Shown here piece by piece: positions 11,876 to 45,026 of a stretch of 64,000 nt of DNA. The translations under genes were made by a program, and so were the position numbers. The stretch lies in contig JBLDXI010000054.1 of assembly GCA_047495785.1 (NCBI GenBank), positions 1,612,001 through 1,676,000 of the forward strand, in the 5' to 3' direction. The notes below the pieces were generated by a model that was given only the letters and a program-made list of their open reading frames with translations, did not search any database and was not told where the DNA came from. The DNA is from Lepidodermella squamata. Its lineage: Eukaryota > Animalia > Gastrotricha. Numbering within the stretch: position 1 is the stretch's first letter; each line of letters begins with the position of its first letter.

Positions 11876-12234
11876 TAGACCGCAGCCAGCGTTGCAGCTG
11901 AATAGATAATTACGATACACCAAAAATTACGCCGCAAATTAAAATCACAAATCACGTTTAACTGGAAGAAAGCGCTGTGAAAGAAAGAAGGAAGAAGCTG
12001 TTGAAAGCGGGGGAATTGGTGCAATCCGTGAGCTTATTTTAGCATTTACGTCGTGCCGCCTATATCCTAAAGCACTGAGGAGCGTGAAAACATTCTTATA
12101 CTTGAGTGCATGCATACAATCGTGTGTACAGTTGTGTTCGCGTATACCAAAGTTAAAGGATACGTTTAAAAATGCTACCTCTTTGTATACGAAGGAAAAC
12201 AAGCTCACTATGCTGCCACGCTAAAGTTCTACAC

Positions 12235-14174
12235 ATGAGACAACGGAAGCGCCGAATCGCCATTATACTATGGCTAATTAGCTTCATATGGTCAATTTAT
12301 GTCGTTCAATCGATATGGGAGCGATTTTTATTTCTAACAAGCAATGAACCGTATCAAAAATTCGTTTTGAACGAACCGAACGGAGATGGTAAGCCGGTCG
12401 TGCCAAATTTACATGGCGAAAATGGCGCCGCGGTGTATGTCGATCGGAAAAAGCTTGACCGGGTTGACTTGCAGCGATACTCACAAGATTTTTTCTACTA
12501 TCACATGAGCGCTTTCACATCTGATGCTGTCTCCCTTCACCGCTCTCTGCCGGATAAGCGACATCCAGATTGCCTGGTTATCAGTTATCCAATCGATAAA
12601 CTTCCAGATACATCAGTGGTGATAACTTTCTACAACGAAGCTTGGTCCGTTCTGCTGAGAAGTGTCCATTCAGTGCTTGATCGATCGCCGGAAAGCTTGA
12701 TCAAAGAAGTTTTATTGGTGGACGATTACTCGGATCTTGATCACCTACAGCAGCCGCTTGAGGATTACGTCAAGCATTTCCCCAAAGTTAGACTGGTTAG
12801 GCTAACGGAAAGACATGGCCTTATTAGGGCCCACAACAAGGCGGCTGAGCTGGCGACGGGGACTGTCGTGACGTTCTTGGATTCACATATTGAAGTTCTG
12901 CCAGGGTGGCTTGAACCTCTCTTGTATAGGATCTATCAAAATGAGACGGTTGTTGCTATTCCAGTCATGGAGGGTATAAATGGCACAACCATGGCGTATG
13001 AGGAAGGAATCCCTGAAATGGTTGGCATCTTTCACTGGGATTATCTGCTGCAAAACTGGATAGTGGTGAGTTTGGATGAGTAGCTCGGAAAATAATTCAA
13101 AATTCAAACCATTACAGCTGACTGAATGGCGTAAAAAGCTTCGAAGTAAACACTCCGACCCTATTCTTAGCCCTGCCCATATGGGCGGTCACCTTGCGAT
13201 TCGCAGGGACTTTTTCCTCAAACTCGGGAAGTATGACGAAGGTTTTGAGATATGGGGTGAGTAAATCCGATTTTAAAATGGATCTTTCAGCATTTTCTCC
13301 TCGTTTAGGCTCTGAAAACTTGGAGTTGGCCTTGAAGGCATGGATGTGTGGAGGTAGCATGGAGATCCTACCTTGTAGCCGGGTTGGCCACATTGTTCGA
13401 AAAGCCGTGATGCCACGAATCCTGCCATATGCCCATCCTTATGCCCCAATCAAATTCTTTTTCTTGAGAAATAACATTCGCTTAGCTGAGACTTGGCTCG
13501 ATGATCATCGCTTCTACTACTATCACACCCTACCCGTACCATTAAGCAATGATGTCGATGTTTCTGAGAGGAGGAAGCTCCGTGATCAGCTGAAATGTAA
13601 ATCCTTCAACTGGTACATGAACAACGTGTATCCTGAGGGGTTCAACCCAATGGAAACTGAGGCGGCAGGGCAAATTAGAAGCATCGAATACAATCACTGC
13701 CTTGAATCAAGTTCTAATGGTGATCTCAAGATTCGTAGATGCCGGCAACCTAAGAGTGAGTCATTCAAATTTCTCAGAGAGATTCGATCTTTTGGGTTTA
13801 TTTCATTTAAAGAAAGTCAAGAATGGTACTTGACAAAGCATGGCCAAATAAGGCGCGAGGAACTCTGTTGGCAAATCTGGGACACATCTTTAATAGCAAA
13901 CCAATGCCACTTCGACTACACCAAAACATCGTTAGTTCAAAAGTTTGAATATCTCGACGTAAGTTTATCCAAAGTTCGATCTATCATTATTATACATGAG
14001 CTTTCTTGAAATGTTTAGAACAAGTTGATTCGGAGCTCATTCTTAAATGCCTGTTTGACTTTTTTTGACTCAAAGCTGTTATTCCTGCCATGTGATGCTG
14101 ATATTCCATATCAGCTATGGGACTGGAAGCGGGGTCTCGCCGATTTCATGCCCCAGCGGCGGCCAATTGAATAA
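12235..14174 (+). CDS. GALNT: Polypeptide N-acetylgalactosaminyltransferase (GT27), copy A, with divergent active-site motifs
   Basis: Exons about 12235-13065, 13118-13256, 13309-13755, 13813-13958, 14019-14174. N-terminal TM segment, [18 protein letters not shown] (DxH), WGSENLE, PCSRVGH, ricin-type lectin C-terminus. Family-level symbol only. Confidence 0.92.
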
Positions 14175-14394
14175 ATGTCTTTCAAATAAAATTGCCTTTT
14201 AACAGCATATGTTAAATGTCTCGATCCTTGCTGATTGCTGAATACTGAATATTCTCATACGGCGAGCTGGTGACTCATCAGTTTTTAAAAAAAAACAGGA
14301 CTGGGGATCCAAAATCGTTGCCAATTTTTTTTCTTAGAAAATGGTTTTCGGCGAAGTGCAAGGGCACTATTGAAATCAAACTCTACCAAAGCCT

Positions 14395-14822
14395 AAAAAT
14401 CTACCTATCCCTAACCTAATCCTAAGCCTAACCCTAATCATGACCCTATTTCTAATACTAATACGAGCCCTAACCCTAACCCTAATCCTAACACTTATAA
14501 TTAATTAATTTTTCTTTGTGGCATTTAGTTTTTTTTTTATCAATTTTCAATTTCAGACGAATCCGTTTTTCATTCCGACCTTTAACGAGTGCATTGATCT
14601 AAGCGGAAACGAAGTGAAATTAGCAAGACTCAACCAGTGCCAATCAAAAATGGAACTAATCCTAACCATAACCCCAACCCATCTTCTAACAATTATCCCA
14701 ACCCCAGCCCTAACCCTATTCCCAACCCTATTTCTAACCCCATTCCTAACCCAATTCCTAATACTAATCCCAACCCTAACCCTATTCCCATTCCTACCCC
14801 TATTCCTAACACTAATACCAAT
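14395..14822 (+). repeat. Degenerate CCCTAA-like hexamer arrays (about 14395-14495 and 14655-14822)
   Basis: ccctaaccctaaccctaatcctaac and variants ccctat, cccaac and cctaat are directly visible. Confidence 0.85.
14545..14657 (+). pseudogene. Orphan copy of the GALNT-B last exon, with its splice acceptor, frameshifted
   Basis: tttcagACGAATCCGTTTTTCATTCCGACC...GAAGTGAAATTAGCAA...ACCAGTGCCAATCAAAAATGGA is homologous to 17346-17455 and has a short deletion at the AKCD codons. Confidence 0.8.
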
Positions 14823-15180
14823 TATCGTTTTGCTGAAAATCATAATTTTATTCTAAAAAATGTGTAGGAATAGTAATATTGTCATACAGCAATATGAATG
14901 AAAGAACAAGTCGAACAATTCGACGTTAATTTAAAGAAAAAATCGATGAAAAAACTCAAGTTGTTATTAAGTTGTATTTTTTTCCGACATCCTTGTTACC
15001 TCCATTCATCAATTACTGCTCTCCTCAAACAATAGCCCATTCATTCGTTACTACTTCTCATACTAACTCGCTCTTCATTGTGTGTGTTAACCTTTATTAA
15101 CTTGGCGCAGTGTCTTCAATGGCCTTAAATGAATATTAAGCAAGCCGACTTAAGAGATAACCCTCACATAAAACCTACTT

Positions 15181-17588
15181 ATGCAAAGAAAATTTACCAG
15201 CCGATATTTGAAGCACCTACTCGTCGTCATCGCAATTACGTGGCTGCACTGTTTCATCTACCTAATACGACAAGGCAAAATCACTGACCTGGCTGATCAT
15301 CGGCAAAAAATCGTGAATAACCCAGATTTTCACGGCAGAAATGGAACAGGAATTCGGATTAAAAAATACACATTGGACACGGAAGACTTCAACCGATACA
15401 TCGATGGCTACATCAATAACATCTTCAACGAATTTGCCTCAGACATGATGTCCTTACATCGATCCCTGCCTGATATGAGACTACCGGAATGTAGGAATTT
15501 CAGCTATTCCGTCGATAAATTGCCGACAACCTCGATTATTATCACTTTTTACAACGAAGCTTGGTCGACCTTACTGCGAAGTATCCACTCAATTTTAGAC
15601 AGATCGCCGCCTCATTTGTTGAAAGAAATTATTTTGGTCGATGATTTGTCTGATATGGACCATTTAAAGGAACCCCTCGAGCGATATGTCAGTAATTTGC
15701 CCAAGGTGAAAATTATTCGGGCCGATGAGAGGAAAGGCCTGATAAGGGCGAGAATTTTAGGGGCGACTTACGCGACTGGGGATGTGTTGACCTTTCTCGA
15801 TTCTCATATCGAATGTACGGAAGGGTGGCTGGAACCTCTTTTACATAGAATCTACCTTGATCGGAGGAACGTTCCCGAGCCGCTGATTGATATTATTAGG
15901 GACGATACTATGGAATACGTGAAGCTGGTACCGCCGTTCCAGATGGGGATTTTTGGTTGGAATCTCTTTTACGGCTGGGCTTTTGTTAGTTTACTGGAAA
16001 CATTTTTTCGCCTGTTTTTAACAAAAAAATTAATTTTGAAGCAAGGTCCGTGGAGGGAAAAATCACGTAATAGTTCGGCGGATCCGTTTCCGGTTCCAGC
16101 GATGGCGGGTGGATTGTTTTCCATAGATCGGAAATATTTTTACGAATTAGGAACCTATGATACCGGAATGGACCTATGGGGTAAGTGAGAAAAATTTTTA
16201 ATTTCAAAATTTGCTAAAATTTGGCAATAAAATGGAAAATTTCAAAAATGGGGTGATAGAGCAATTTTTCATTTAAAAAATGTGTGGATAAAATGGAAAA
16301 TTTGAAAAATTCGGGAATAACATAAAAAAATTAAAATTTTACAATTTGTCAACAATCTGCATATATAAAATCGAAAATTTCTAAAATCTGCGAATAAAAT
16401 TGAAAATTTTGATTAAAAATCTTCGGTTAGCCCGCCAAATCTTTCCGTTTTCATTCCCGGCAAAATTCATCATTCATCATTCATCATTCATCCATTAATG
16501 GAAAAATTTATTTTTGATAATTTTCAGGCGGTGAAAATCTTGAAATGAGCATTCGAATATGGACATGCGGCGGACGCATCGAAATGGTACCATGCAGCCA
16601 CGTCGGTCACATTTTCCGCCCCGCCAACCCAACTTTCGGCCTGTTCAACTTCGCCAAAAACACGATGCGATTCGCTGAAGTGTGGCTCGACGATTACAAA
16701 AAGCACTACTACAAAAATCTGAACTACCTAGACCGGATGGCGGTTGGCCGCTATGGCGATGTCTCCCAGCGGCGTGAGCTGCGGCGAAAATTGAAATGCA
16801 AATCTTTTAAATGGTTCATCGATAACGTGTACCCTGAACTTTTCGCCCCGGAAGATGCTTTGAGGGGTGGCTTCATTTACTTACCGGATAAACGGCTATG
16901 TCTCGCTAATAATTTCGACACTCTGGATCGCAAGGAATATCAAAATTTCATTGTGGCAAAGCCGTGTGATGCGAATGATGACTCGCAAATGTGGTACTTG
17001 ATGAATCTGAAGCTGAGTCGGATTCGAAATGCGAGGGGTTGTTTGGACTACAACACGAGGGATTCTAAACTTATATCTTACTGGTGCCATTATGGGACGA
17101 CAACTCAAGATTTTAAATATTTAGATGTAAGCAAAATTGTTGAGTTTGTGCTTCGTAGAATTGAATTTAAAAAAATGTTAAATATAATTCCGTAAATTTC
17201 CATAAAAATTGAAAATTCACGGTATTGGAAATTCCCAAGAATTAATTTTGAGAAATTACATTCATTTTCTTGAATTCAAGAAGATTAACGGAATTTTACT
17301 TCATTTTTCATGATGGTAATCAGTTATTTTCCCCCCAATTTTCTATTTCAGACGAATCAAGTTTTCCATCCGACGTTCAACGATTGCCTTGAGTTGAGCG
17401 GAAGCGAAGTGAAATTAGCAAAATGCGACACAACCAGTGCCAATCAAAAATGGAGCTGGGACTCAAATGCGCCCTTCGCAAACTCAGCCAACCAAAGTAG
17501 AACTTTCGTCTTTCGATTATCAACCTCCCTCTCAATTAATTTACTATCACTGATATTTTTAGTTAATTTCGTTTCAACTGAAAGATGA
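15181..17588 (+). CDS. GALNT: Polypeptide GalNAc-transferase, copy B, with hydrophobic C-terminal tail
   Basis: Exons about 15181-15984, 16042-16180, 16528-17126, 17352-17588. Motifs [37 protein letters not shown]; ricin lectin domain. Confidence 0.95.
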
Positions 17589-17886
17589 AAGCTGATTATT
17601 TGCCTAAAAATTGAAATAAATTACTGAGAAAATTTTAGAGTTTTTGCTGAACTTTCTAAATTATTTATTCAATTTTTCTAATTTCAAAAAATGTTTCCAC
17701 TTGAATGACGCTGCGTGCGAAGACTCACATTGGTCTCATCTCGGCTGCACTTCAGAACAAAACGCACTCGAAAGCGCCGCAATTGTTGTTCATACAATTG
17801 TAAGCCGACGTGACATTATTACACCGAAAAGTTCACCTGCACATCACATTTACAAATACATTACTATTTCAAAATGTAAGCAAATA

Positions 17887-19854
17887 ATGTTAAATTCACG
17901 CCGGCTGAAACTCAGGCTAGCTCAACTGTTATTCCTCATCAACATCGCATGGCTTTACTTCGTCGTCACCGCGCTGCAGGCCTATATTCGGATCCACCTT
18001 AAAAATGCCGGAAATTTCACTCGATACAATTTCACCGAGCCTGGCGGGGAAGATTTGCCAGATATTTACGGAAAAATGGGCGAGGCAATCAAAATCGACC
18101 CATCACAGCTGGATCGGCTCAATTTCCGGCGGTATTCCGAGGGCCTATGGCAGCATAATTTCAATCAATTCGCCTCAGATATCATGAGCCTCCACCGATC
18201 TGTGCCGAATATTTTGGAAAATGAGTGCAAATCTGTGGTTTATTTGCTGGATAAACTGCCTGATACCTCGGTGGTAATTTGCTTCTACAACGAAGCCTGG
18301 TCGACCTTATTGAGGACAATTCACTCAATTCTCGACAGATCCCCTCCGAAATTGCTGAAAGAAATCATTCTAGTCGATGATTTTTCGGATTTGCCCCATT
18401 TAAAACAACCCCTCGATGATTTCATCAGCACCTTGCCTAATAAGGTCAGGTTAATTAGGTCCCAGGAGCGATTAGGCCTTATGAGGGCGCGAATGTTGGG
18501 TGCTTCAAATGCGACGGCTGCGACCTTGACCTTTCTCGATAGCCACGTCGAGTGTTCGGAATTATGGCTGGAAAATTTGATGTTTTACATCTATCAGGAC
18601 AGCAGTTTAGTCGCGGTCCCAGCAGTTGATATTATCGATTGGAAAACAATGCAATATTTACCTGTCCAGGGTAGCTTAATCGGGGCCTTCGATTGGTCGT
18701 TAACCTTCACGTGGATAGCGGTAATTTTCAATAAATTATTTCAAACTAATTCAAAATTGAGTTAGGAATACGATAGGATGCATGCAAGAGACGTCAGGCC
18801 ATCTAGGTGGAGCCCTGTCAAAATGCCGGCGATGTCTGGTGGGCTGTTTTCGATTGATCGGGAATTTTTCTATCGATTGGGTGGCTATGATACTGGAATG
18901 CAGTTTTGGGGTATGTTTCCTAATTTTTCAATAAAATTTTCAAATTAAAAATTCAAATTAAAAACTAAAAAAATTTTAATTTTAATTTTAAAAATATTGA
19001 GAAAATATTAAAAAATTTTAAGGTGGTGAAAATCTTGAAATGAGCTTTCGAACTTGGATGTGTGGTGGGAAAATTGCGATGATCACCTGTAGCCATGTTG
19101 GCCATATTTTTCGCGAGCGGGTCCCTTATCTCATCGGTGATTCATACCGGCTTCACAACAACGTCCGCCTAGCCGAAGTCTGGATGGACGACTACCGGTT
19201 TTACTACTACAACAACTTTCTAAAATCATACCCGGATACAACAAATATCGACATTTTGGAGAGGAAGAAATTACGCGAAAATTTAAAGTGTAAATCTTTC
19301 GAATGGTACCTGGACAATATTTATCCGGAATTGTTCGACCCGGTCAAAGTGTTGGCTGATGGGCAAATGCGGAATATAGGCAATAATTTGTGCGTTGAGG
19401 TCACGGTTTTCGGAATGTTCGCGCGGAGATGTGCGATTTTTCACGTTAATCAACGCTGGTCTTTGAGTAAACTCAACCAAATTAGAAGCATCTGGCTGTG
19501 TTGGCAGGTCAACCCGGAAAGTTCCGAGCTGTATCTCAGCGGTTGTGATTACAAAGAAGGCAAACCGCAGCAAGAATTTATTTACACAAAAGTAAAATTA
19601 AATTTGTGAAAATTATCAAATATTAAAAATATTTTTTTCAGGATAATTTATTGCTGAACCCTCTCACTCAGAAATGTATTGGAATCAATGACAGTGATGT
19701 GATGAATCGGCTAAAGATGATGAAATGCGACTCGACTAATGCTTCGCTCCAATGGGCGTGGAAACGCGGCCCGCCGGAATATCTCAGGCCGAACGCCTCC
19801 AATCGGCATAAATCAGTGTCAATAGGGGAAAAATTTGTATCTTCGATTTTCTAA
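17887..19854 (+). CDS. GALNT: Polypeptide GalNAc-transferase, copy C
   Basis: Exons about 17887-18720, 18766-18911, 19023-19591, 19642-19854. Motifs [42 protein letters not shown] follows the stop codon. Confidence 0.93.
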
Positions 19855-20288
19855 AATAAATTAAAATCAAAATATAAACAATAAAGTTGTTTGTGTATTT
19901 TTTAGATTTTTTATTAACACAGGTCATTTTTTTATTAGCGGTGACCGGTATGTCATCGGATCAAATTACGCTGCGTCTCAGTGTCACGCGCTCAGAAATA
20001 AAGCGCGCGCGCGCATCAAAAATAAACAAAAAATCCATAAATAGCGCGCACACAGCGCTAAATAGCCGCAATATTTTATGTGCATACCTCATCCTGATGA
20101 AAGCCTTATCACTTCACTTCACCGCACATTGCGTAGTATTGTGCGCTCACGCTGCTGCTCTTGTTTGTTTGTTATTTCATTTTCAACCTCTGCACTGTAG
20201 TAATATATAGGATTTATTATGTTCCTTATCTCTTATATATCATACTACTTTCGCTATTTACCACATGCCCTAAATAACATGTGAATGA

Positions 20289-22182
20289 ATGCTACGAAAT
20301 TTACGGCTGAGGCTTCTGTTCAGCAACCTTCTGCTAATTTTTGTTCCTGTTTGGTTAATTACAATTGCCTTGGATCGGATATTTTACGTAATATCTTCCG
20401 ATAATTCGACGAGGAATTTCGGTGAAAATGGACGGCCTGTTTTAATAGATAAATCCCGACTGGATCGATTTAGCTTACACCGCTATAATACTGGCTACTC
20501 GCGACATCGATTCAACGAATTCGCATCGGATTTAATTTCGGTCCAGCGAAATTTACCTGATTTTCGCGATGAGGAATGCAAGAATCAATCAATCAAAACG
20601 CGAAAATTACCTCGAACCTCGGTTATTATTTGCTTCTACAACGAGGCCTGGTCTGTTCTATTGCGAACAGTTCATTCCGTCTTGAATCGATCACCACCTG
20701 AATTGATTGAGGAAATAATTTTAATCGACGATTTTTCCGATCTCGACCGCCTTAAAAAGCCTTTGGATGATTACTTTTCATCTTATGCGAAAATAAAGAT
20801 TTTTCGTACAACAAAACGAGAAGGCTTGATACGAGCCAGATTGCTAGGCGTCGAAAAATCTCGCAGCGAAGTTTTGACGTTTCTCGATTCTCACATTGAA
20901 TGCACTGAAGGATGGTTGGAGCCGTTACTCTTCAGAATTTTCGAGGATAAAACCAACGTCCCAACGCCTTTGATCGATGTGATAGATGAGGACGATTTTC
21001 GGTTCAAAAACTCGTCTGCCAATTTTTACGGCGCTTTCAATTGGGACCTTCGTTTCGGCTGGCTGATTGTATGTTGGCAGCAATTTCGATGAAATTGTAA
21101 AAATTGCAATTTATGATTTCAGCTTTCAGCCAGGCGCAAGTCAGTCCTAACTTCGAAAGCTAGTCCTATTGATTCCCCAGCTATGGCCGGTGGTCTTTTC
21201 GCTATTCATCGGCAATTTTTCACTGATTTAGGCCTTTACGACTCAGGCATGGATTATTGGGGTGAATTGTTCGAAAATTTCAAATAATCCACCTTAATTT
21301 TCTTTTTCAATTTTTAGGTGGCGAAAATTTGGAGTTGAGCTTCAAAATCTGGATGTGTGGCGGTCGTTTAGAAATTTTGCCATGCAGCAGAGTCGGGCAT
21401 ATTTACCGAGTCGGAATTCCTTACCTAAAGGATGATTCAGCTTTCACGAAGAACAACATTCGATTGGCCGAAGTTTGGATGGATGATTATCAGCACTATT
21501 ACTACGATCGATTGGGCTATGAGCCACGGATCGACGATCAAAGCCTCGAGCACAGGAAATCGATTCGAAATCGATTGAAATGTCAATCGTTTGATTGGTA
21601 TCTGAAAAATGTCTTCCCCGAGCTGTTTATACCCCATGAAGCTCAATCCTCGGGACTAATTCGAAGCAACGCGGCGGAAAATTCATGTTTAACAGCTGAG
21701 AAAGCTAGGGAATTTTTAACATTGGCTTCATGTGATGGAAATGACGAAAATCAGCATTGGTTTCTTTCGAAAGATGGAATGGTGTTAAGGGATCGAATTT
21801 GTTGGCAGGTTTTTGAAAAGGGCGGGCTTCACGTCGATTGGTGTTGGAATGACAGTAACTATCAACATTTTGAACTCACCAAGGTAAGGATTTCATTTTA
21901 TATTTTTTTGAAAATTTGAAAAAAAACTTTAAATGTAATTTTCAGTTAAATCAAATCCGGCATCAATTTCTGAAAAAATGTCTCGAGGTCACCGATGATA
22001 GACGGTTAATTATGGCTCCATGCAATAACGAGGTCAAAGGTCAAATGTGGCAATGGCATCGAGGTCCTCGGGACAAAGTTCCGCGGCATTTTCTACATAA
22101 ATTAGGCATTAATTCGTCACCGAAAATCAGCTCTTTCTCGCTCAACTCGTTATTACTAACAATTTTATTAATGCTATTTTAA
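20289..22182 (+). CDS. GALNT: Polypeptide GalNAc-transferase, copy D, with hydrophobic C-terminal tail
   Basis: Exons about 20289-21068, 21123-21261, 21318-21883, 21946-22182. Motifs [35 protein letters not shown]. Confidence 0.95.
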
Positions 22183-24490
22183 AATAAATAAAACAATTGA
22201 AATGAGGAATATCTTTAAATTTCCTGTTTCTTTGATGCTTCTGTTCGGCATTTTTTCCAGCAAATGTAACGGACCTTGAGTCATTCTTCGAGTTAGCGAC
22301 CATTTTTGACGCTCATTTCTGCTCGAACACGGCCTCATGTAGGGTTCTTGGAAATTTTCGCTGATCTCTAGACAATCTCCACTTTCAACGTGCCGTATTT
22401 GCTGGGTTTTCTAGAAAAATTAAAATTAAGGAGGATTTAAAAAAATATTTGTTACAATACCTCTAAATATTCGAAAACAGTCGTCTTCCTTGCATCTTGT
22501 TCACAATGGTTGAAAGTCAGTTTTGAGCCTTCGTATGAAAGACAAGCGTAGTCCATGCTGATTTGGCCGTTTTTGCGAAAATAAAAATGTTGCCGGCCTG
22601 AGAAAAAAATTAAAGGAAAAAAAATAAAATGATGAATTTACCTCCATTATTTCCACATTGCCAAATTATGAATTTTTTCTCATCGTTTTTTATTTCCAGA
22701 CACCTATCACCGTGTCTGATGTCGCCTGAATAAATCGCTTCATCCGGTACCAAAATTTCGCTGTAGACATTTTTCAAGTACCACTCGAAAGATTTGCACT
22801 TCAAATCTGCTCGTAATTTTTTGCGATCAGTTACGTCGCCGTATTCCGGGATGTTGTACTTGAATCGTTCGTAGAAATAGAACCGATAGCCGTCCATCCA
22901 AACCTCGGCGAGTCTAACTTCATTTTTGCGTAGGAAATCGGCAGTTGTTTCGAATTTGTAAGGCATTCGGTAGCGAAAAATATGCCCGACTCGGCTGCAT
23001 GGGACATTTTCAATCGCTCCTCCACACATCCAGATTCTAAGGCTCATTTCGATATTTTCGCCTCCTAAATAAAAAAATGAAGAACGAGTATTTAACTAAT
23101 GGCTTAATTTATTACCCCAATAATCCATCCCAGCGTCGTAGGATCCGAGGTGGAAAAAATATCTGCGATCGATTGCGAATAGGCCACCAGCCATAGCTGG
23201 GGCTTTGATGGGATCCGTTGGAACTTTGGTCATTCGCTGAAAAATGAAAAACAATTAACTGAAATTTTTAAATTTCAACAATTTTGAATTTTGAATTTGA
23301 ATAAAATAGCTATTTTAGTTAGTTATTGTTAATTATTTTGAATGAACTACTTCCAATAGCGTCCCAAAATTTGGCCAACCACTTTTTATTACTTTACGGG
23401 CAAAAATCCAATTTTCTATGATCAGATAAACATCATGGCTAAGGACTCCCCATCCTAAATTCAAAAAATCGGTATTTTACTAGGATTGGCAACATTTCTC
23501 TGGATTTTTTGTGGTTGCCACAGTAGAATACTATGTACTAGTATAGTTGAATTTGAATGCTATTTTCCCGCAAAACTTGAACTTTGTCCTTCAAGTAACA
23601 AGTTCAAGTGTCCTTCAATTAACAAAAAATTCAAAGCTTTAGTTAAAATTTGGATTTTATTCAAAAAAAATTAATTTTCGAATTCTGAATTTTTTTCAAG
23701 CCCTTAACTTCGGACTTACGTAAGACCAGGTGAATCTGAGATCCCAATCGAACACGCCGACATTGTTAGGAGCTGACGGTCCATATCGGAACGTGTCCCA
23801 TTCAATAACATCAATCACAGGAATGGCAACGTTAGTCTTATTAAGGTAGATCCTATGCAGCAACGGTTCCAACCACCCTTCCGCACACTCGCAATGAGAA
23901 TCGAGAAACGTAAGGACAGTACCTATCGCCATCTCAGCGCCAGCCATTCTCGACCGAATTAAGCCTTCTCGCCGCTTGTTTCGCAAAATTTTAACCTTGG
24001 GGTAATCCTTTAAATAAGTTTCAAGCCGCGACTTGAGATGCGGCATAGTCGAGTAATCATCGACCAAAATTATCTCCCGAATTAAATGAGGCGGGGATCG
24101 GTTTAAAACAGAATGAACAGTCCTTAACAACGCGGACCAAGCTTCGTTATGGAAGCAAATTACGACAGAGGTATCGGGTAACTTTTGAGTTGGATATTCG
24201 ATGTTTTTGCAATCAGGGTGTCTAGGGTCGAATAGGCTGCGGTTGACGGAGATCAAATCCGAGACGAATTCGTTGAACGCGTTGTTTTCCATGCCTTTGT
24301 CGTACTTGCCCTGTTCGATGTAGCTCAGTTTGTTGTAGTCGATATGAACCGGATGGCCGCCCTCGCCTAATTTACCGGCATATTCCCGGCTTCGATCCCG
24401 GCCTAAGGTAGTGGCGACAAGCCAGAAGAAGGCTAGATGTAGGATTAGTAGGGCTACGGCTAGTGAAAGCCGCTTTTTACGCAGCCTCAT
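22174..24490 (-). CDS. GALNT: Polypeptide GalNAc-transferase, copy E (most canonical motifs), with hydrophobic C-terminal tail
   Basis: ORFs 23696-24490 and 22610-23047 plus small exons near 23115-23237, 22461-22597 and 22174-22410. Motifs [52 protein letters not shown]. Last exon KTQQIRH...[18 protein letters not shown]. Confidence 0.95.
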
Positions 24491-25454: not shown

Positions 25455-26561
25455 ATGAGCCCTAAGTTCATTGCTGTTAAATTCGCCCAAGCTTGTGAAG
25501 ATGACGACCTGGCTTACTTCTCAGCCGTTCTCAACGGAGCTATTCTGTTGCTGGGGGCCGACGAAATCGCTCGAATGATATGCGCGGCAGCAAGCCACAA
25601 ATGTCTAAGCTACCTGCTTTCAACGAACCGAGTTAATTTTGGAAGAAAGTCACTTCACGAAAGTGGCCCAACGTTGGGCTGCATGTGCCTGACAGCAGTT
25701 TGCAATCCATGGATGCGGTGGAACATCACTGGTTTGCAGTACACAAATATAGGACGCCGTGGTGAAGATCGTGTCGAAGACAGAGTAAGAACTGCGCAAA
25801 TTTTACTTGATCACGGTGTCAATGTCGATTCCGCCTACAACAACGACACGGCTCTAAAATTGAGTGTAGATCACCTGCTGGATCCTTTGGTTGAACTTCT
25901 GGTAGCCCGTGGGGCGACTCTAAATGGCTTAGCATCTGCTTTGAATACCGCTTTCCACCAGGAACGTTGGAACATTGCAAAATTTCTCATCGAGGCTGGA
26001 GCGCAACCCGTGTACATCCATAACCCCGCGAACGATGCCTATTATTCTCGACTTGTACCGACATCATGCATGTTTGACATGATAATTCGAGGGAATTCAG
26101 TGGATCACATTGATACAGGAGGGGTGCAAATAACTGCTTTTCCGCGAGGCGCAAGATCCGAACTCTTCAAATCTCTTGCGATGGCTGGTTTTCTGTGCGG
26201 CGAATGCGCCAAGGACGAATATTTCACAAGCATGATAATAGCGAGATGGGCCTGTGACAGAATCAACAATGCGCATCAACTCGATTATCGCTTGTTCGAA
26301 ATTCTTCTCTTCTCAAGAATGACATCGTCATTCCACCCGGAATACTACAAGCCGGAACTTGGCGATGGCGTTGGGAGTGGTTTGCATCAACTGTTAATGC
26401 CGTGTGTGATGCAGCTTTTCCCGATGAAGTTACAGGCTATTTGCAGAATGACGATCCTCAACCGGCTGCCGACTGGCTTCAAGAAACGAGCCGAGGCTAT
26501 CGATAAAGGATTGATTAACTCCTTACCCCCTATCTTACTTGGCTATTTGAAATTTGAGTAA
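25455..26561 (+). CDS. Intronless ankyrin-repeat and SOCS-box (ASB-like) protein
   Basis: 368-aa ORF. Ankyrin-like segments AQILLDHGVNVD...TALKLSV...VELLVARGA and ALNTAFHQERWNIAKFLIEAGA; C-terminal SOCS box PMKLQAICRMTI...SLPPILLGYL. Confidence 0.85.
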   Translation: MSPKFIAVKFAQACEDDDLAYFSAVLNGAILLLGADEIARMICAAASHKCLSYLLSTNRVNFGRKSLHESGPTLGCMCLTAVCNPWMRWNITGLQYTNIGRRGEDRVEDRVRTAQILLDHGVNVDSAYNNDTALKLSVDHLLDPLVELLVARGATLNGLASALNTAFHQERWNIAKFLIEAGAQPVYIHNPANDAYYSRLVPTSCMFDMIIRGNSVDHIDTGGVQITAFPRGARSELFKSLAMAGFLCGECAKDEYFTSMIIARWACDRINNAHQLDYRLFEILLFSRMTSSFHPEYYKPELGDGVGSGLHQLLMPCVMQLFPMKLQAICRMTILNRLPTGFKKRAEAIDKGLINSLPPILLGYLKFE

Positions 26562-38771: not shown

Positions 38772-41700
38772 CGGTTCGGGTCCGGTTAAATCGTATATTG
38801 TTATGTGCCTCTCTGCGATTGAATATTAAATTTTCTGAGATTTCTTAATAAAAATAATTGTTGAGGAGTGTGCTCCCAGCTTATTAATTTCACATCTCGT
38901 TCGGCTTGGATACGGCATCAACTGTACACTACAACGGACTGTAACCAGCATCGCCGAGATGAAGCCGGAATGCCTCCTGCTACTGTCGATGTTTGGCGCT
39001 GTGGTTATCCTATGGACTGTCGACTTGTCCTTGGCTGGGTCACTTCTCGCTTTTGACCTGGCAGGACAGACTAATTCAAATTCGAACTTGGCTGCTTCTA
39101 CGCCACTCAAGGCGCGTGTGAATCGCGTGCCGTTTGAAACGTGGTGCCGTGAAATCAACGGTCAAGACGACTATAGTGTGCTCGGACACGACGGCAGGCC
39201 AACAGAAACCACGACGCATGAAGGTTTTTCGATCTTTTTTTGTTATTTGGCCCGCGATCCAAAACGTCAAATTACTCGCATGAGAGGTTTTATTCTGATT
39301 TTACTCTTGATTTCGGGGGTTCAGCCAAATCCGGGGCCCCCTGCTAGACACGAATTACCAGTCACACCAAATCATGAGTTGAGCGATGTAGTTCAGAAAT
39401 TGAATTATGGGGACGAAAAAATGAAATTCATACACGCGGTTCATTTCAATGTGAATGGCTTGACATGTAAACTGGAAAAATCTAGTATTTTCAAATATGA
39501 AGCCCTCGCTGAATTCTGCTCAGTGAATAAGCCTGATCTAATCCTAATATCGGAGACGAAAATTCCGGCGAATTCTACACCGAAATTTGTCGAGGATATG
39601 TTTTCAGACTATAGTTGCATTTGGGTTGGACGGGAAAATTCTGGCGGTGGCGGTGTAGCAATATTAGTCCGCAACAATTTGGTGATCAAAAATTATTGGT
39701 CAACCTCATCCACAATCGAGAACATTCACGCTTTAATCGAATCACCAAATGGAATGACATTCACAGCATCCGTGATATATCGATCACCAACAGTAATGCC
39801 CAAAATTCCAGTCGAAGAACTAGACAGTGTTTTAGTTGATCTTACTGCAAAATCGATGCATGTCAATCATCGATTTATAGGCGGAGATTTCAATTGGGAC
39901 CTTCTCGATATCAAAGTTGACTCAGAATTACGAGACACATTCAATACGTTTGATCTGAAACATAGCTTTCCACACTGCATTACTAGGCCAGCCGCTCTTA
40001 CCATGCTCGACCATTTTTGGACCACTGAAAAGGAAGAAAACATCATCTTATCGGGAACAATACATGGGCTTAGCGACCATCACGGGATCTTGTTAGTTAT
40101 CACGGACCAGGGAACAAAAAGGTTTAAAAACCAAGTCGCAACCGAATCTAAGTATCGTAACTTGAAAGCTATCAAGGCAGACCAGTTCAATTATGAACTC
40201 GGTAAGGCACTAGGAAGTCCTAGCATCGAAACCGGAGATAGCTCACAGAATTGCTGGGATAAAATCCAGACAGCGATTATTAAGGTTCTTGATAAACTTG
40301 CACCAGAAACAGTTAGAAAATCTACGCACCGCCGCACCAAACACCGGCCAACTTTTCACTCACTTAGCAAACAACGAAAGGAACATCGAAAAATCCGGAA
40401 ATCGCGAAGGGCCAAATGGCGCAGTAAAGTTACTGAGGCAGGGCGGGATTCCAAAAAAATCTGGAAGGTGGTTAATGAGTTTAGACCTAAGAAATCGTCC
40501 AACCACAACGACTTTCCATCTCTGAATAAAGATGAGTCGTATCTCCTGGCTAACACTTTCAATCAGATGTTCTCGAACGTTGGCAAAAAGATAGCAGATT
40601 TGCTTTTGAATCGCCTAGACTTCGACCGGAAGAACCCGAAGAATCAGGAATTTTCATTTAGGCATATCACGCAAAGGGAACTATGCCTGGCATTCTCAAA
40701 AGTGAAAAACAAATCTACGACTGGTCACGATGGTATTCCGGAGTCTATTCTTAAACTAGCTTCTGATGTTTTGAAACCTCATTTACTCGTTCTGTTCAAT
40801 GTAATAATTGACAATAACACAATTCCTGAGCAATGGAAAATCGCAGTGGTTCATCCTCTTCACAAAGGTGGGTGTAAATCTGACGTAGGTAATTTTAGGC
40901 CTATTTCAATACTGTCAGCCATTTCCAGAACTTTTGAACGGTGCATTTCCATGCAAATTAAGGAACATATCACCAATATCGAGTTTCTTTCGCCTAGCCA
41001 ATTTGGTTTCAGACAATATCATTCTACCGACACATGTCTAGCGAAACTCAGTAATGATCTACGTAAGACTCATGAACAAAGCAAAATATCGGTAGCTATT
41101 GCGATAGACTTGAGCAAGGCTTTTGACTCACTGCATCACCAAGGTGTCTATAACTCCTTAATTAGCGCAGGTTTCACAGAGAAAGCAGTCGGATTAATTC
41201 GCAATTACCTTGAGAACCGAAAACAGTATGTTTCGATAAACAATACCTTTTCAGACCATTTGCCTTTGCTCTACGGCGTGCCCCAAGGTAGTGTACTGGG
41301 GCCGCTACTTTTCACGCTATATATTAATGAGATGGCATCGATTCCCAGATTTGCGAAACTAGTCCAGTTCGCAGATGATACCACTGTATATCATTCAGGA
41401 AAAGATGTTGAAAAGTTACAACAGGAGCTTCAGTACGACATTGATCAATTGAGTGTCTGGCTCGCAGCGAACAGTCTAATGGTAAACGGGAAAAAATCGC
41501 AGATGATTGTTTTGCCAACCGACTACAACACCACTTCCCCACCTAAATTCGAAATCAAAATTGACGGCTGCTTGATCGGAACAACGTCATCACTCAAAGT
41601 CTTGGGGTTTACTCTTGACAATAAATTGGGATTTAAGGAACATTTAAGGGGGGTGAAAAACAAATCACGTAGTGGCTTATTCGGACTGAGGATCGCTGCT

Positions 41701-42497
41701 AAATACCTTGATCGAAAGACTCTCAAACTCATGGCAAATGGCCTAATATTCTGCCACTTAATGTACTGCGATACAACTCTCTCGCAGCTGGCACCGACCA
41801 AGCTCAGCAAACTACAACGTCGCCAAGACCAGGCCGTAAGAATCATTTGCCACGCTCCGATGAACGCGGACCCCGCACCGCTAAGACAAAAACTCGGATG
41901 GCTGGATCTTGACGGAAAACGAAAAGTTCACCTGGCAACACTGATCTGGCGCTGCATTAATGGTGAGGCCCCGGTAGCCATAGCCAACTTCTTCAAACTT
42001 CGAACCGCACCAATGGCTTCTACCCGCAAACAAAACGCCCTCAAAGAACTCTCAAACATCCTAGAGGTGCCCAGGACTAAGTCAGCGATCATGGATCGGT
42101 GTTTGGCTCACCATGGATCGGTATTTTGGAACTCTCTCCCCGACCACATCCGCACATCCAAAACTGCCGACCAATGCAGAAACTTGGTTTACCGTCACCT
42201 GCTTACACAACAAAAAGAACTTACCTCAAATACCGCCGCCTGAAACCAGAAGACAAGAGCATCTGCATTTTATATTTTTATATTGATCCTGCTACAAACC
42301 AACATTCATCACAATTGTTTTCTTTGTTGAGCTATCTTCTTTTTTATACATATAAGTTACATGATGTTTTATAACTATCTAATCTTGTGTACAGTTTAAA
42401 TCGAACCTAACTAATCCATTGTCTTTTTTTACAGCTGAGCTTTCCAACTTTTTCTAAAAACGGATGAATGGCTCATAAATAAATAAAATAAATAAAT
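38772..42497 (+). mobile_element. Non-LTR retrotransposon (CR1/L2-group-like), single ORF, (TAAA)n tail
   Basis: Uninterrupted APE-RT ORF, about 230-nt 3' UTR, and a TAAA repeat tail at 42476-42497. The 5' boundary is inferred. Confidence 0.9.
38959..42243 (+). CDS. LINE ORF2: 2A-like peptide, APE endonuclease and reverse transcriptase
   Basis: Endonuclease motifs HFNVNGL, LISETK, GGGVA, GDFN, LDHF, SDH; RT motifs FRPISIL, QFGFR, DLSKAFD, GVPQGSVLGPLLF, FADD; leader LLLISGVQPNPGP. Confidence 0.95.
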   Translation: MKPECLLLLSMFGAVVILWTVDLSLAGSLLAFDLAGQTNSNSNLAASTPLKARVNRVPFETWCREINGQDDYSVLGHDGRPTETTTHEGFSIFFCYLARDPKRQITRMRGFILILLLISGVQPNPGPPARHELPVTPNHELSDVVQKLNYGDEKMKFIHAVHFNVNGLTCKLEKSSIFKYEALAEFCSVNKPDLILISETKIPANSTPKFVEDMFSDYSCIWVGRENSGGGGVAILVRNNLVIKNYWSTSSTIENIHALIESPNGMTFTASVIYRSPTVMPKIPVEELDSVLVDLTAKSMHVNHRFIGGDFNWDLLDIKVDSELRDTFNTFDLKHSFPHCITRPAALTMLDHFWTTEKEENIILSGTIHGLSDHHGILLVITDQGTKRFKNQVATESKYRNLKAIKADQFNYELGKALGSPSIETGDSSQNCWDKIQTAIIKVLDKLAPETVRKSTHRRTKHRPTFHSLSKQRKEHRKIRKSRRAKWRSKVTEAGRDSKKIWKVVNEFRPKKSSNHNDFPSLNKDESYLLANTFNQMFSNVGKKIADLLLNRLDFDRKNPKNQEFSFRHITQRELCLAFSKVKNKSTTGHDGIPESILKLASDVLKPHLLVLFNVIIDNNTIPEQWKIAVVHPLHKGGCKSDVGNFRPISILSAISRTFERCISMQIKEHITNIEFLSPSQFGFRQYHSTDTCLAKLSNDLRKTHEQSKISVAIAIDLSKAFDSLHHQGVYNSLISAGFTEKAVGLIRNYLENRKQYVSINNTFSDHLPLLYGVPQGSVLGPLLFTLYINEMASIPRFAKLVQFADDTTVYHSGKDVEKLQQELQYDIDQLSVWLAANSLMVNGKKSQMIVLPTDYNTTSPPKFEIKIDGCLIGTTSSLKVLGFTLDNKLGFKEHLRGVKNKSRSGLFGLRIAAKYLDRKTLKLMANGLIFCHLMYCDTTLSQLAPTKLSKLQRRQDQAVRIICHAPMNADPAPLRQKLGWLDLDGKRKVHLATLIWRCINGEAPVAIANFFKLRTAPMASTRKQNALKELSNILEVPRTKSAIMDRCLAHHGSVFWNSLPDHIRTSKTADQCRNLVYRHLLTQQKELTSNTAA

Positions 42498-42530
42498 GCC
42501 GCAAGAGGCCCCGGTTCGAGTCCGGCTATG
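42498..42530 (+). other. tRNA T-arm/B-box-like fragment (tRNA- or SINE-derived)
   Basis: gaggccCCGG-TTCGAGT-CCGG forms a T-stem-loop containing the GGTTCGANTCC B-box consensus. No complete cloverleaf is present. Confidence 0.5.
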
Positions 42531-42844
42531 TTTTCTGTTTTCTTGTCCTAGATCTTAGACTTTTTAAAATTGAATTGTAATGCCGAGGCATGGTCCTTAA
42601 AGGCATGTTCTTAGTTTGCGGATCGTCGATCCTGGTAGCAGTTGGGCCTCGGGTGGCGGCACGCATCAAACGGCGACCCGAGGCGATGAGTGGTTGGTTC
42701 CTTTTGGTGGCTGATGGACTATCTTTTGCCTTTCACATACATAGAGATTTTGTACATAGAGTATATTCAATTTGCTAACACTGAGGGGCCACTAACAGCC
42801 CGTTAATCTCCTTTTTAGCCTGCGGGCTGCCTTGCATCAACTTG

Positions 42845-45026
42845 GCAGTTTTTCAGATTTATTGTTTCAAGTCCATCCAACATTAAATAAAGTTGCTCTC
42901 GGACCAGGGCAGAGTCAGGTATTTCATCATATCATTATATCATCAAATTATTATACATCATTATGATTAATTTGTTTATCTTTATATATTTTATTATTAT
43001 TTTTTTTGTTATATTGACTCGTTTTGATTCTGGGTGACTGGTTTGCAGCTGGTTTGTTTGGGTGGTTCGCTTGGCTTGACGCTTTGTTCTGTTCGTAGGA
43101 TTGCTCCGTTGTTCCGAGTCGAGTTCGGGTTTCGGGATTGGTCCTCAACACAAAATAAATTAAGCACGAGGGGAGGCTCAAGTTTACTCAATAAGATTTT
43201 TCCGCGACTGCAGGTGATGGGTGAGTTTCTCAGACGAAGGGCTCAGATGAAGGCTCAAGGCACGTAGGCACGTATGACGTAGGCTCAGGGCGAAGGCTCA
43301 GTCAAGGCTCTGTAAAAGGCAAAGCACAATTGTTTACTATATTTCCAGGGCTCACCAGTTGGCTCGGTCAGGGCTCCAACCAGGCTCAGGCTCGCGGGCT
43401 CAGGGTGGAGGCTCAGTCAAGGCTCTGGGCTCAAAGGCTTAAAGGCTCAGTCAAGGCTCTGTAAAAGGCAAAGCACAATTGTTTACTATATTTCCAGGGC
43501 TCACCAGTTGGCTCGGTCAGGGCTCCAACCAGACTCAGGCTCGCGGGCTCAGGGTGGAGGCTCAGTCAAGGCTCGCCAAAATGTTTGAATTTGAGGCCTC
43601 AGGGTTCTGGGCACAGACAGGCATTGGCTGACGCTGAATTAGACGAGGGCAGGATATTCTCGGTAGGCTCGAGGGCTAAGGATCTAAAGGCAAGGATGAG
43701 GTGCACAGCTGTAGAGTAGAAGTTTCTGGCAATGATGGCCGAACTTCAAATATCAACCAGTTAAAATGTGTGCGCCGAGGCATAACTGGGATTAAGTCGA
43801 CCAAGTGCCGTATGCGCCATGCGGGAGAATGATCGTTCATGGTCTTATGGCCGAAGCTATCGAAAGATAGTGAAGCTATGTATTTAATGTAGTCGGCCAT
43901 AACATCGCCAGCTGCCAGGCAGCGTTGGCCGTAGCGTTCCAGACGTTCGGTGAAGATGTCTTCAATTGAGGGCACATCAGCCAGAAATAAAGTGCCAAAG
44001 GAATCGGCGTCGTAAGGCAAATCGAGGGCAGCGCGAAGCCCGTTCGCCTGTATTTCAAATAGTCTGTTGATAGAAGACTTGGGTTGACAGGACCATGCTG
44101 GCGAGCCGTACGTGGCCAGGCTTTCGGCCATCGATTTATGAAACATGATTCCTAGTCGCTGTGGCAAAATCTTACGTGTCATGATGCCTCGTAGGACACC
44201 AGCTCTCGGACGGCACTTCGCGGAGATGCTGGATATGTGAGGCTCCCAGCTGAGTTGAGGGGTCAGCGTGACACCCAGGTACTTAATTGAGGGTGTTTGT
44301 TTTATTGTGTGCTTTCCGAGCTTGAGCGAAATCGAGGGCACTGAGTTATAATATCCAAAAAGCATGACCTCGCATTTTTCGAGATTTAAGATCAGGCGCC
44401 ATTGTTCGCACCAGCCGACCGTGACGTCTAGCTGTGCTTGAATTCGGCGGGTACAGTCGAGCAGCGACTTGCCGTAAGCCCAGTTGAGGGCGTCGTCAGC
44501 ATACGTTCCGTTCGCTACTTTCCGCTTGCCATCGTCGGGCTGCAGTCCCATCGGCTGCATATCCGCCGTGAAAAAGATGAATAACAGTGGGCTCAGCGGT
44601 GAGCCCTGAGGCACACCACAGCAGATCGGGTGTTGTTCGCTGAGCTCGCTGTCGACTTTGAGCTTGAAGCAACGGCCGCGCAAAAAGTCGGCCACCCAGC
44701 GGATTATAGGCTCGGGGACACCGGCTTCAATAAGCTTATGCAGGAGTCCATTGTGCCAGACAATGTCGAAGGCACTCTTGAAGTCTAGGGCAGCTGCGAC
44801 GAGCTTCCAATGTCTGGCCAGCGCTACGGCGACGTCGTTGACGAGCCTGAAGGTGGGGTCGGTGGCACTTCGACCTTGCCAAAAGCCGAACTGGTGTTGC
44901 GGCAGCAGATTTTTGCTTACCAGGAAATCGAAGAGAACTTTTGTCACTAGCAGTTCTAGACACTTGCCGAGTGCTGGCAGCAGGGCGACTGGTCTATAGG
45001 ACTCAGGTAGCTCTGGATTGAAACGT
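42845..45026 (-). mobile_element. 5'-truncated Jockey/I-group-like LINE; RT ORF 43676-44947, open upstream to about 45020
   Basis: SYRPVALL, QFGF, LDFKSAFD, GVPQGSPLSPLLF, YADD, KYLGV. It interrupts gtttCAAGTtgatg, with CAAGT on both sides. Confidence 0.9.

Follow-up and report, generated by a model that had tools for sequence, protein, structure and literature searches.

Polypeptide GalNAc-transferases of the GT27 family start mucin-type O-glycosylation. The textbook picture is that of type II Golgi enzymes with a free lectin domain at the C-terminus, which guides subsequent glycosylation. In a stretch of 64,000 nucleotides from the gastrotrich Lepidodermella squamata (contig C54, positions 1,612,001-1,676,000; called the window here, with coordinates counted from its first nucleotide unless a contig is named), five genes for such enzymes, A to E, lie at 12,172-24,490, A to D reading along the plus strand and E in the opposite direction. 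The assembly comprises 121 Mb and is that of an animal with short GT..AG introns; neither the nematode SL1 pattern nor COX1 was found in it. In B, D and E the reading frame continues past the lectin domain into an extension with a hydrophobic end, which raises the question whether these tails are genuine parts of the enzymes and, if so, what they would do there. The results showed that the tail is genuine and under selection, that it belongs to a GT27 clade specific to this lineage, and that chance read-through does not account for it. As to its role, we favour a membrane-attachment signal, most likely of the glycosylphosphatidylinositol (GPI) type, and weigh this reading below against a second membrane span, a translated peptide that is no anchor, and non-functional sequence.

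GT27 genes of the window and their C-terminal tails

The five genes and the ends of four of them were delineated as follows.

Gene A, 12172..14174, plus strand: GT27, tail-less; exons 12172-13065, 13118-13256, 13309-13759, 13817-13958 and 14019-14174; from tblastn to an oyster GALNT5-like protein and a homology-guided splice model, with the last exon read from the DNA.
Gene B, 15181..17588, plus strand: 592 amino acids, intact GT27; exons 15181-15988, 16046-16180, 16528-17126 and 17352-17588; Pfam PF00535 (7.6e-32) and PF00652, no internal stop.
Gene C, 17887..19854, plus strand: 586 amino acids, intact GT27; exons 17887-18720, 18766-18910, 19023-19591 and 19642-19854; from a splice model and the RNA joint 19591>19642.
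Gene D, 20289..22182, plus strand: 572 amino acids, intact GT27; exons 20289-21072, 21130-21261, 21318-21883 and 21946-22182; Pfam PF00535 (1.7e-31), RNA joints and a splice model.
Gene E, 22174..24490, minus strand: about 570 amino acids, intact GT27; last exon 22410-22174; PF00535 (1.4e-32), splice models, last acceptor read.
Tail of B, 17460..17585 (stop to 17588), plus strand: 42 amino acids after QKWSW, with the small-residue tract ANSANQS, a polar spacer, a 15-residue hydrophobic part and then STER.
Tail of C, 19762..19851 (stop to 19854), plus strand: 30 residues, weakly hydrophobic; PNAS sequon kept, hydrophobic end lost.
Tail of D, 22057..22179 (stop to 22182), plus strand: 41 amino acids after QMWQW, with a 17-residue linker, INSS as candidate attachment site, the spacer PKISSFS and a 13-residue hydrophobic end, nothing beyond.
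Tail of E, 22177..22293 (with the stop 22293-22174), minus strand: 39 amino acids after QKWSL, with a PLHLL linker, a PNRS sequon, the spacer IKETGNLK, an 11-residue hydrophobic part and a final K.

The splice models were built by homology-guided dynamic programming and corrected with RNA joints, and they are reliable only where the reference aligns. Since such modelling produced spurious introns at the N-terminus and in the tails, the terminal exons were set by the continuity of the open reading frame (ORF) together with the RNA joints. For gene E, the stretch around the first intron (23237-23708) is modelled with less certainty.

The spliced models of B to E contained no internal stop, and the motifs DSH, WGGEN and CGG..VGH were present in all four; gene A carries WGSEN, a divergent form of WGGEN. 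The N-termini of B to E begin with basic residues followed by a hydrophobic run of 17-24 residues, which is too long for a typical cleaved signal peptide and resembles an uncleaved type II signal anchor, and the stems of these proteins are very short. B, D and E are about 50% identical to named GALNT5/9/12 proteins. Matches to the ricin-type lectin domain PF00652 were obtained exon by exon, with E values of 1.4e-5 to 3.3e-7 and scores near the gathering threshold because the domain is split across exons, and C..C..QxW is conserved in the last exon of 18 genes. A to E are GT27 polypeptide GalNAc-transferases by every sequence feature tested, except for the C-terminal extension in B, D and E. 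That extension is an added feature, and it gives no ground for excluding the three from GT27.

The tails of B, D and E share exon and frame with the last lectin repeat, downstream of a polypyrimidine-(C/T)AG acceptor. Their uncharged runs span 11-21 residues, several polar S, T and N included. The Kyte-Doolittle maximum over 11 residues (KD11) was 2.67 for B, 2.77 for D and 0.91 for C. The crude 19-residue insertion energy, calculated on a scale that is not position-weighted, was +2.2 for B, +2.9 for D and +6.1 for E, with 4, 0 and 1 residues beyond the run, respectively. Gene A ends in ...QLWDWKRGLADFMPQRRPIE followed by its stop, 15 residues beyond QLWDW, and 14019-14174 is its true last exon. 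The C tail is a decayed version.

A sequence-only reading of the window had announced an expanded GT27 cluster with hydrophobic-ended tails past the last QxW in B, D and E, a weaker tail in C and none in A. This description was borne out: the three tails are present letter for letter and in frame, the low KD11 of C and the early stop of A agree with it, and about 28 GT27 loci were found in the genome, A to E among them. The small residues, polar spacer and hydrophobic end that had been listed can be seen in the tails, which are physically like a GPI signal. It had also stated that canonical GT27 enzymes stop at the lectin domain. No hydrophobic C-terminus was seen in 104 full-length homologues, which came from molluscs, brachiopods, arthropods, nematodes, tardigrades and vertebrates; their median distance from the last QxW to the end was 14 residues, compared with 39-42 in B, D and E. 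Within that sample, the tails are specific to the clade of this genome, and the rule agrees with the enzymes of the other animals.

A profile of 11 tailed last exons, run against 1.84 billion representative proteins, retrieved no tailed GT27 protein; its best 150 matches were multi-repeat ricin lectins and no match reached the tail columns, and the search is uninformative on orthologues. A protein search with the last-exon ORF of D yielded no candidate. The top match to the first-exon ORF of C, P0001, was a duplicated-domain model and was rejected as a close relative; nothing exceeded 55% identity. Full-text literature searches turned up nothing relevant on GPI-anchored or C-terminally anchored GalNAc-transferases, and nothing on GPI-anchored cell-surface glycosyltransferases. 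A C-terminal anchor-like tail on a GT27 lectin domain is thus a layout met in no other searched animal enzyme or publication, which does not establish its absence from close relatives of this organism.

Between A and B, at 14530..14660 on the plus strand, there is a relic of a B-type last exon, consisting of an acceptor and about 130 nt of lectin repeat that is about 85% identical to B. It shows a 5-nt gap frameshift and stops in translation, and is flanked and invaded by a CCTAA/CCCTAA-like microsatellite (14350-14860), which yields long spurious ORFs in three frames. The ORF at 14,518-14,856 resembles a long tail of gene A but does not belong to it, being this frameshifted relic running into the microsatellite.

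Distribution, selection and transcription of the tails

The last exon could be read in 25 of the GT27 loci, and a hydrophobic tail was found in 12 genes: B, D and E; L015, L023, L016, L017, L011 and L004, situated on this contig 19 kb upstream; L005, which lies downstream; L010 on contig C11; and L008 on contig C24. The tail sequences cannot be aligned between subgroups, yet all their frames are open. A linker of the PLHL type or the WKRGPPDY type precedes the tails, and it occurs in tail-less relatives too, which end just past it (L003 compared with L004, and L012 with L023).

In a maximum-likelihood tree of the catalytic and lectin core, the tailed genes made up 12 of the 18 members of one long-branched clade found only in this genome. 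Clade support was 83/51 for 17 genes and 67/60 for 18 genes with L004 added. Tails occur on every early branch (L004, D, the pair of E and L005, the pair of L011 and L008), and the tail-less members A, C, L012, L013, L014 and L027 were nested among tailed ones. The tree requires a minimum of 4-6 tail changes; one gain followed by several losses would be the simplest reading, although it is not proven. Outside the clade, no tail was found in any GT27 gene whose end could be read. L003 (C58) is a short-branch conventional member with no hydrophobic tail, and the organism's own GT27 paralogues group with oyster and Lingula with support of 83/83, no more than a hint of spiralian affinity.

One member of the tailed set, L023 (C54:1579975-1583220), has a long branch compared with its near-copy L016, and its third-exon ORF shows no recognisable CGG..VGH. 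Possibly this copy is decaying, with a clean GPI-like tail still in place.

When the 3' flanks were translated from every position, an extension of at least 20 residues with a hydrophobic 11-mer appeared in 1.7% of cases, and in 2.1% under a composition-matched random model. The tail codons of the 12 genes contained no stop in 373 codons, compared with 34 and 13 stops in the other two frames. T at codon position 2 reached 0.43 in the tails versus 0.27 and 0.29, as is expected of hydrophobic codons and not of uniformly T-rich DNA. Among the four closest paralogues, DNA identity in the tails went down to flank level (0.43-0.45 for L017), with 1-5 gap columns in the tails versus 28-36 in the flanks. 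So few indels at flank-level identity indicate constraint on composition and frame, which is typical of membrane signals.

The genome also contains about 40 C1GALT1/Fringe-like loci (on C17, C42, C31, C32, C33 and others; L037-L048), many of them in tandem and mostly long single ORFs, which served as a within-genome negative control. None of the complete C1GALT1-like ORFs fetched had a hydrophobic C-terminal tail, and their ends were polar, which rules out a general T-rich read-through. The refuting case listed in the sequence-only reading, that the hydrophobicity merely reflects read-through into T-rich untranslated sequence, is contradicted by the chance rate of about 2%, by the recurrence of tails in diverged paralogues and by these tail-less enzymes.

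The sole RNA-like run was X1, whose RNA status is inferred from its spliced contigs: exons are covered, intergenic DNA is empty, and predicted GT..AG introns are skipped. Its joints were 19,591>19,642 (the last intron of C), 21,261>21,318 (an internal intron of D) and 21,883>21,946 (the last intron of D). One 490-nt contig spans 21608-21881 and 21944-22159, joining the third exon of D to the last exon and continuing unspliced to 22,159. X1 depth was 3-6 across the last exons of E, and the remaining D/E overlap was covered at E-like depth. The proposed RNA check of the last exons thus came out well for C and D, with both last introns confirmed and the D tail exon followed to 22159, and gave no result for B, which X1 leaves uncovered. 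Transcripts spliced out before the tail did not appear in D, as its transcript enters the tail exon and shows no exit splice up to 22159.

AATAAA or ATTAAA was found 3-35 nt past the stop in most tailed genes and nowhere within the last exons of B to E, so that the annotated stops represent the true ends and the 3' untranslated regions are very short. The signal lies 29 nt after the stop in B; AATAAA stands directly after the stop in D and 7 nt after it in E. The last two genes converge on each other:

D/E coding overlap, 22174..22182: tail-to-tail, 9 nt; from the sequence and ORF coordinates.

The AATAAA of D lies inside the tail codons of E and vice versa. A stretch of about 40 nt (22160-22195) thus holds the ends of the two tails together with the 3' ends of both genes.

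X1 matches an alternative haplotype, and the DNA-like run X2 contains this haplotype too, at roughly half depth. Three alternative-allele differences are listed in the last exon of D: two are synonymous, and the third is an R>Q change in the linker; no indel is listed. In X2, the second haplotype was seen at about half depth at 18225-18540 and 20990-21520, in exons of C and D, with for instance 13 differences per ~140 nt, and X1 agrees with it at several C/D sites. Either the sample is highly heterozygous, or the contigs come from paralogues.

Lipid anchor, membrane span or neither

A GPI signal follows the pattern of a polar linker, small residues both where the lipid is attached and two places further on, a hydrophilic spacer and a terminal hydrophobic stretch, the last quoted as 15-20 residues (PMC10491789). 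Candidate small-residue triplets were found in B (NSA), D (NSS), L004 (NAA), L010 (NKS) and L016/L023 (SGA), with one in L005, the pattern being vague by nature. Four of the 12 tails (D, L005, L016 and L023) end cleanly in the hydrophobic run. KD11 ranged from 2.1 to 3.6 over the tails, and the crude 19-residue energy was +2 to +9 for most and -1.2 for L011; for the N-terminal anchors of the tailed proteins it was -2 to +2.6. The genome's own alkaline phosphatase L031 (C7:676258-679947) ends in ...TGNTGNNSYMLGPSLVIVLLLQMFAS followed by its stop, with a KD11 of 2.83 and a crude energy of +4.2, within the range of the GalNAc-transferase tails. PIG-T/Gpi16, a subunit of the GPI transamidase, is encoded in the genome; a glypican, sought there as a second GPI calibrator, gave no match. 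Only four tails, D among them, passed a strict fungal GPI pattern, which also rejected the alkaline phosphatase tail, so that failing it means little. Five alkaline phosphatase genes were found in the genome, three of them in tandem on C32 (1.555-1.569 Mb), and the C7 copy is the one with a textbook GPI-type tail, while the other four have their ends in further exons.

We give an even chance to the reading that B, D and E are part of a GT27 clade specific to this lineage, whose enzymes are catalytically intact by sequence and have added a C-terminal membrane-attachment signal, most likely of the GPI type. A GPI-type signal is favoured for most copies, D included, and is probably what B and E carry, and a membrane span would be the better reading for L011 and L008. 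Double anchoring by the N-terminal anchor and GPI is plausible but unproven, and a cell-surface or adhesin role is speculative.

According to the favoured reading, the protein would enter the endoplasmic reticulum (ER) as a type II protein via its N-terminal signal anchor, which would place the lectin domain and the tail in the lumen. The tail would then present, in this order, a polar linker, often with an N-x-S sequon, small residues, a short spacer and a run of 11-17 hydrophobic residues at or next to the very end, and the GPI transamidase would read it and swap it for a GPI lipid. A few copies (L011, upstream, and L008) would instead retain the tail, which would then span the membrane a second time. 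In both cases the lectin end would be pinned to the membrane, and since the stem is very short as well, the enzyme would lie flat on the membrane. A GPI anchor would also route the enzyme along with GPI-anchored cargo.

Several observations weigh against the favoured reading. The hydrophobic runs of the tails, at 10-17 residues, are shorter than the quoted length, and gene E has no clean small-residue triplet. Residues follow the run in E (K), L004 (TR), L010 (RI), B (STER), L017 (QNRRVE) and L015 (H/E-containing), and in L011 and L008 about 20 hydrophobic residues are followed by 9-11 polar ones. About half of the tails end in 1-11 polar or charged residues and fit a GPI signal more poorly, and basic residues after the hydrophobic run would fit a membrane span with a cytoplasmic stub. 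An N-terminus resembling an uncleaved anchor is unusual for GPI proteins. As for transcription, the D contig stops 21 nt short of the stop codon, and cover of gene B in X1 was zero.

The same terminal residues speak for the alternative that the tail is a second, C-terminal transmembrane segment, which would turn the protein into a hairpin with both ends cytosolic, its catalytic and lectin domains forming one lumenal loop, and keep it resident in the Golgi or ER. The basic or polar residues after the run in half of the tails, the long runs and polar ends of L011 and L008, the favourable energy of L011 and the N-terminal anchor kept in the sequence all agree with such a hairpin. It is nevertheless rather unlikely, although a real possibility, since the energies of B, D and E are poorer than those of most of their own N-terminal anchors, their runs include polar S, T and N, no residue stands past the run in D, L005, L016 and L023, and the tails match the GPI tail of the genome's own alkaline phosphatase. 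A translated tail that is no anchor, acting as a quality-control or retention signal, as a cleaved propeptide or as a segment packed on the lectin domain, would be in keeping with a sequence that is hardly conserved while its composition alone is kept, and with gene C, which is still expressed and in which linker and sequon persist while the hydrophobicity is gone. We consider it improbable, because linker, small residues, spacer and terminal hydrophobic run recur in 12 diverged genes as a recognised membrane-attachment pattern (PMC10491789), and neither amphipathic periodicity nor conserved contact residues can be seen.

It appears highly improbable that the tails represent functionless read-through into AT-rich 3' sequence or that the tailed copies are decaying. 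The tail codons of D and E are indeed AT-rich and double as each other's poly(A) region, the nucleotide evolution of the tails is almost as fast as that of the flanks, B lacks X1 cover, and the catalytic region of L023 looks damaged. Against these points stand a chance of about 2% per gene compared with 12 of 18 observed, the frame-specific absence of stops, the enrichment of T at codon position 2 and the few indels, as well as the otherwise intact state of B, D and E, the tails of all basal clade members and the other glycosyltransferases of the genome, which have no such ends. At the opposite extreme, the whole GalNAc-transferase clade might be GPI-anchored and leave the Golgi with GPI cargo, with enzymes or lectin domains displayed on the cell surface and acting on or binding GPI-anchored mucin-like proteins; this we hold to be no less improbable than the peptide without anchor function.

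Significance, neighbouring features and known enzymes

A selected tail on the lectin domain, whether lipid-anchor-like or membrane-spanning, would alter the posture of the enzyme on the membrane, the substrates within its reach, such as membrane-proximal stalks, and possibly its travel. The C1GALT1/Fringe-like loci show that O-glycan enzymes have undergone another large expansion in this genome, and with about 28 GT27 and about 40 C1GALT1-like loci, the tails may belong to a large remodelling of surface O-glycosylation. If the surface-display reading were true, it would be a natural case of the old idea of a cell-surface glycosyltransferase as an adhesion or recognition molecule. Natural pairs of tailed and tail-less paralogues are available in L004 versus L003 and in L010 versus L012/L013.

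Elsewhere in the window, a 368-aa single-exon ORF with a weak ankyrin-repeat match (25455-26561) directly adjoins gene E; the public gene-call collection contains no exact copy of it. At 38959-44947 there is a LINE-like ORF of 1,094 aa, in which an apurinic-type endonuclease is combined with a reverse transcriptase, and after it comes a second reverse-transcriptase fragment on the opposite strand.

Compared with known systems, the enzymes described here are like the canonical GALNT5, GALNT9-like and GALNT12 group, with best matches in oyster, Lingula, nematodes and arthropods, in their type II anchor, GT-A domain, DxH, Gal/GalNAc-T motif and ricin lectin with QxW. B, D and E differ from canonical GALNTs in their hydrophobic-ended extension and very short stems. 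With GPI-anchored ecto-enzymes, such as the alkaline phosphatase L031 of the same genome, the tails share small residues, a spacer and a short hydrophobic end of similar hydrophobicity; classical GPI proteins, however, have a cleaved signal peptide, whereas the GalNAc-transferases have an apparent uncleaved signal anchor and about half of their tails are charged-ended. A further comparison is offered by the GlcNAc-1-phosphotransferase alpha/beta precursor and the NTPDase1-type ectonucleotidases, lumenal or ecto-enzymes with N- and C-terminal membrane spans and with folds unrelated to GT27. Should the tail span the membrane, for which L011 and L008 speak, the GalNAc-transferases would resemble them in having a large lumenal catalytic part between two terminal hydrophobic segments, but in B, D and E the C-terminal run is short and only marginally hydrophobic.

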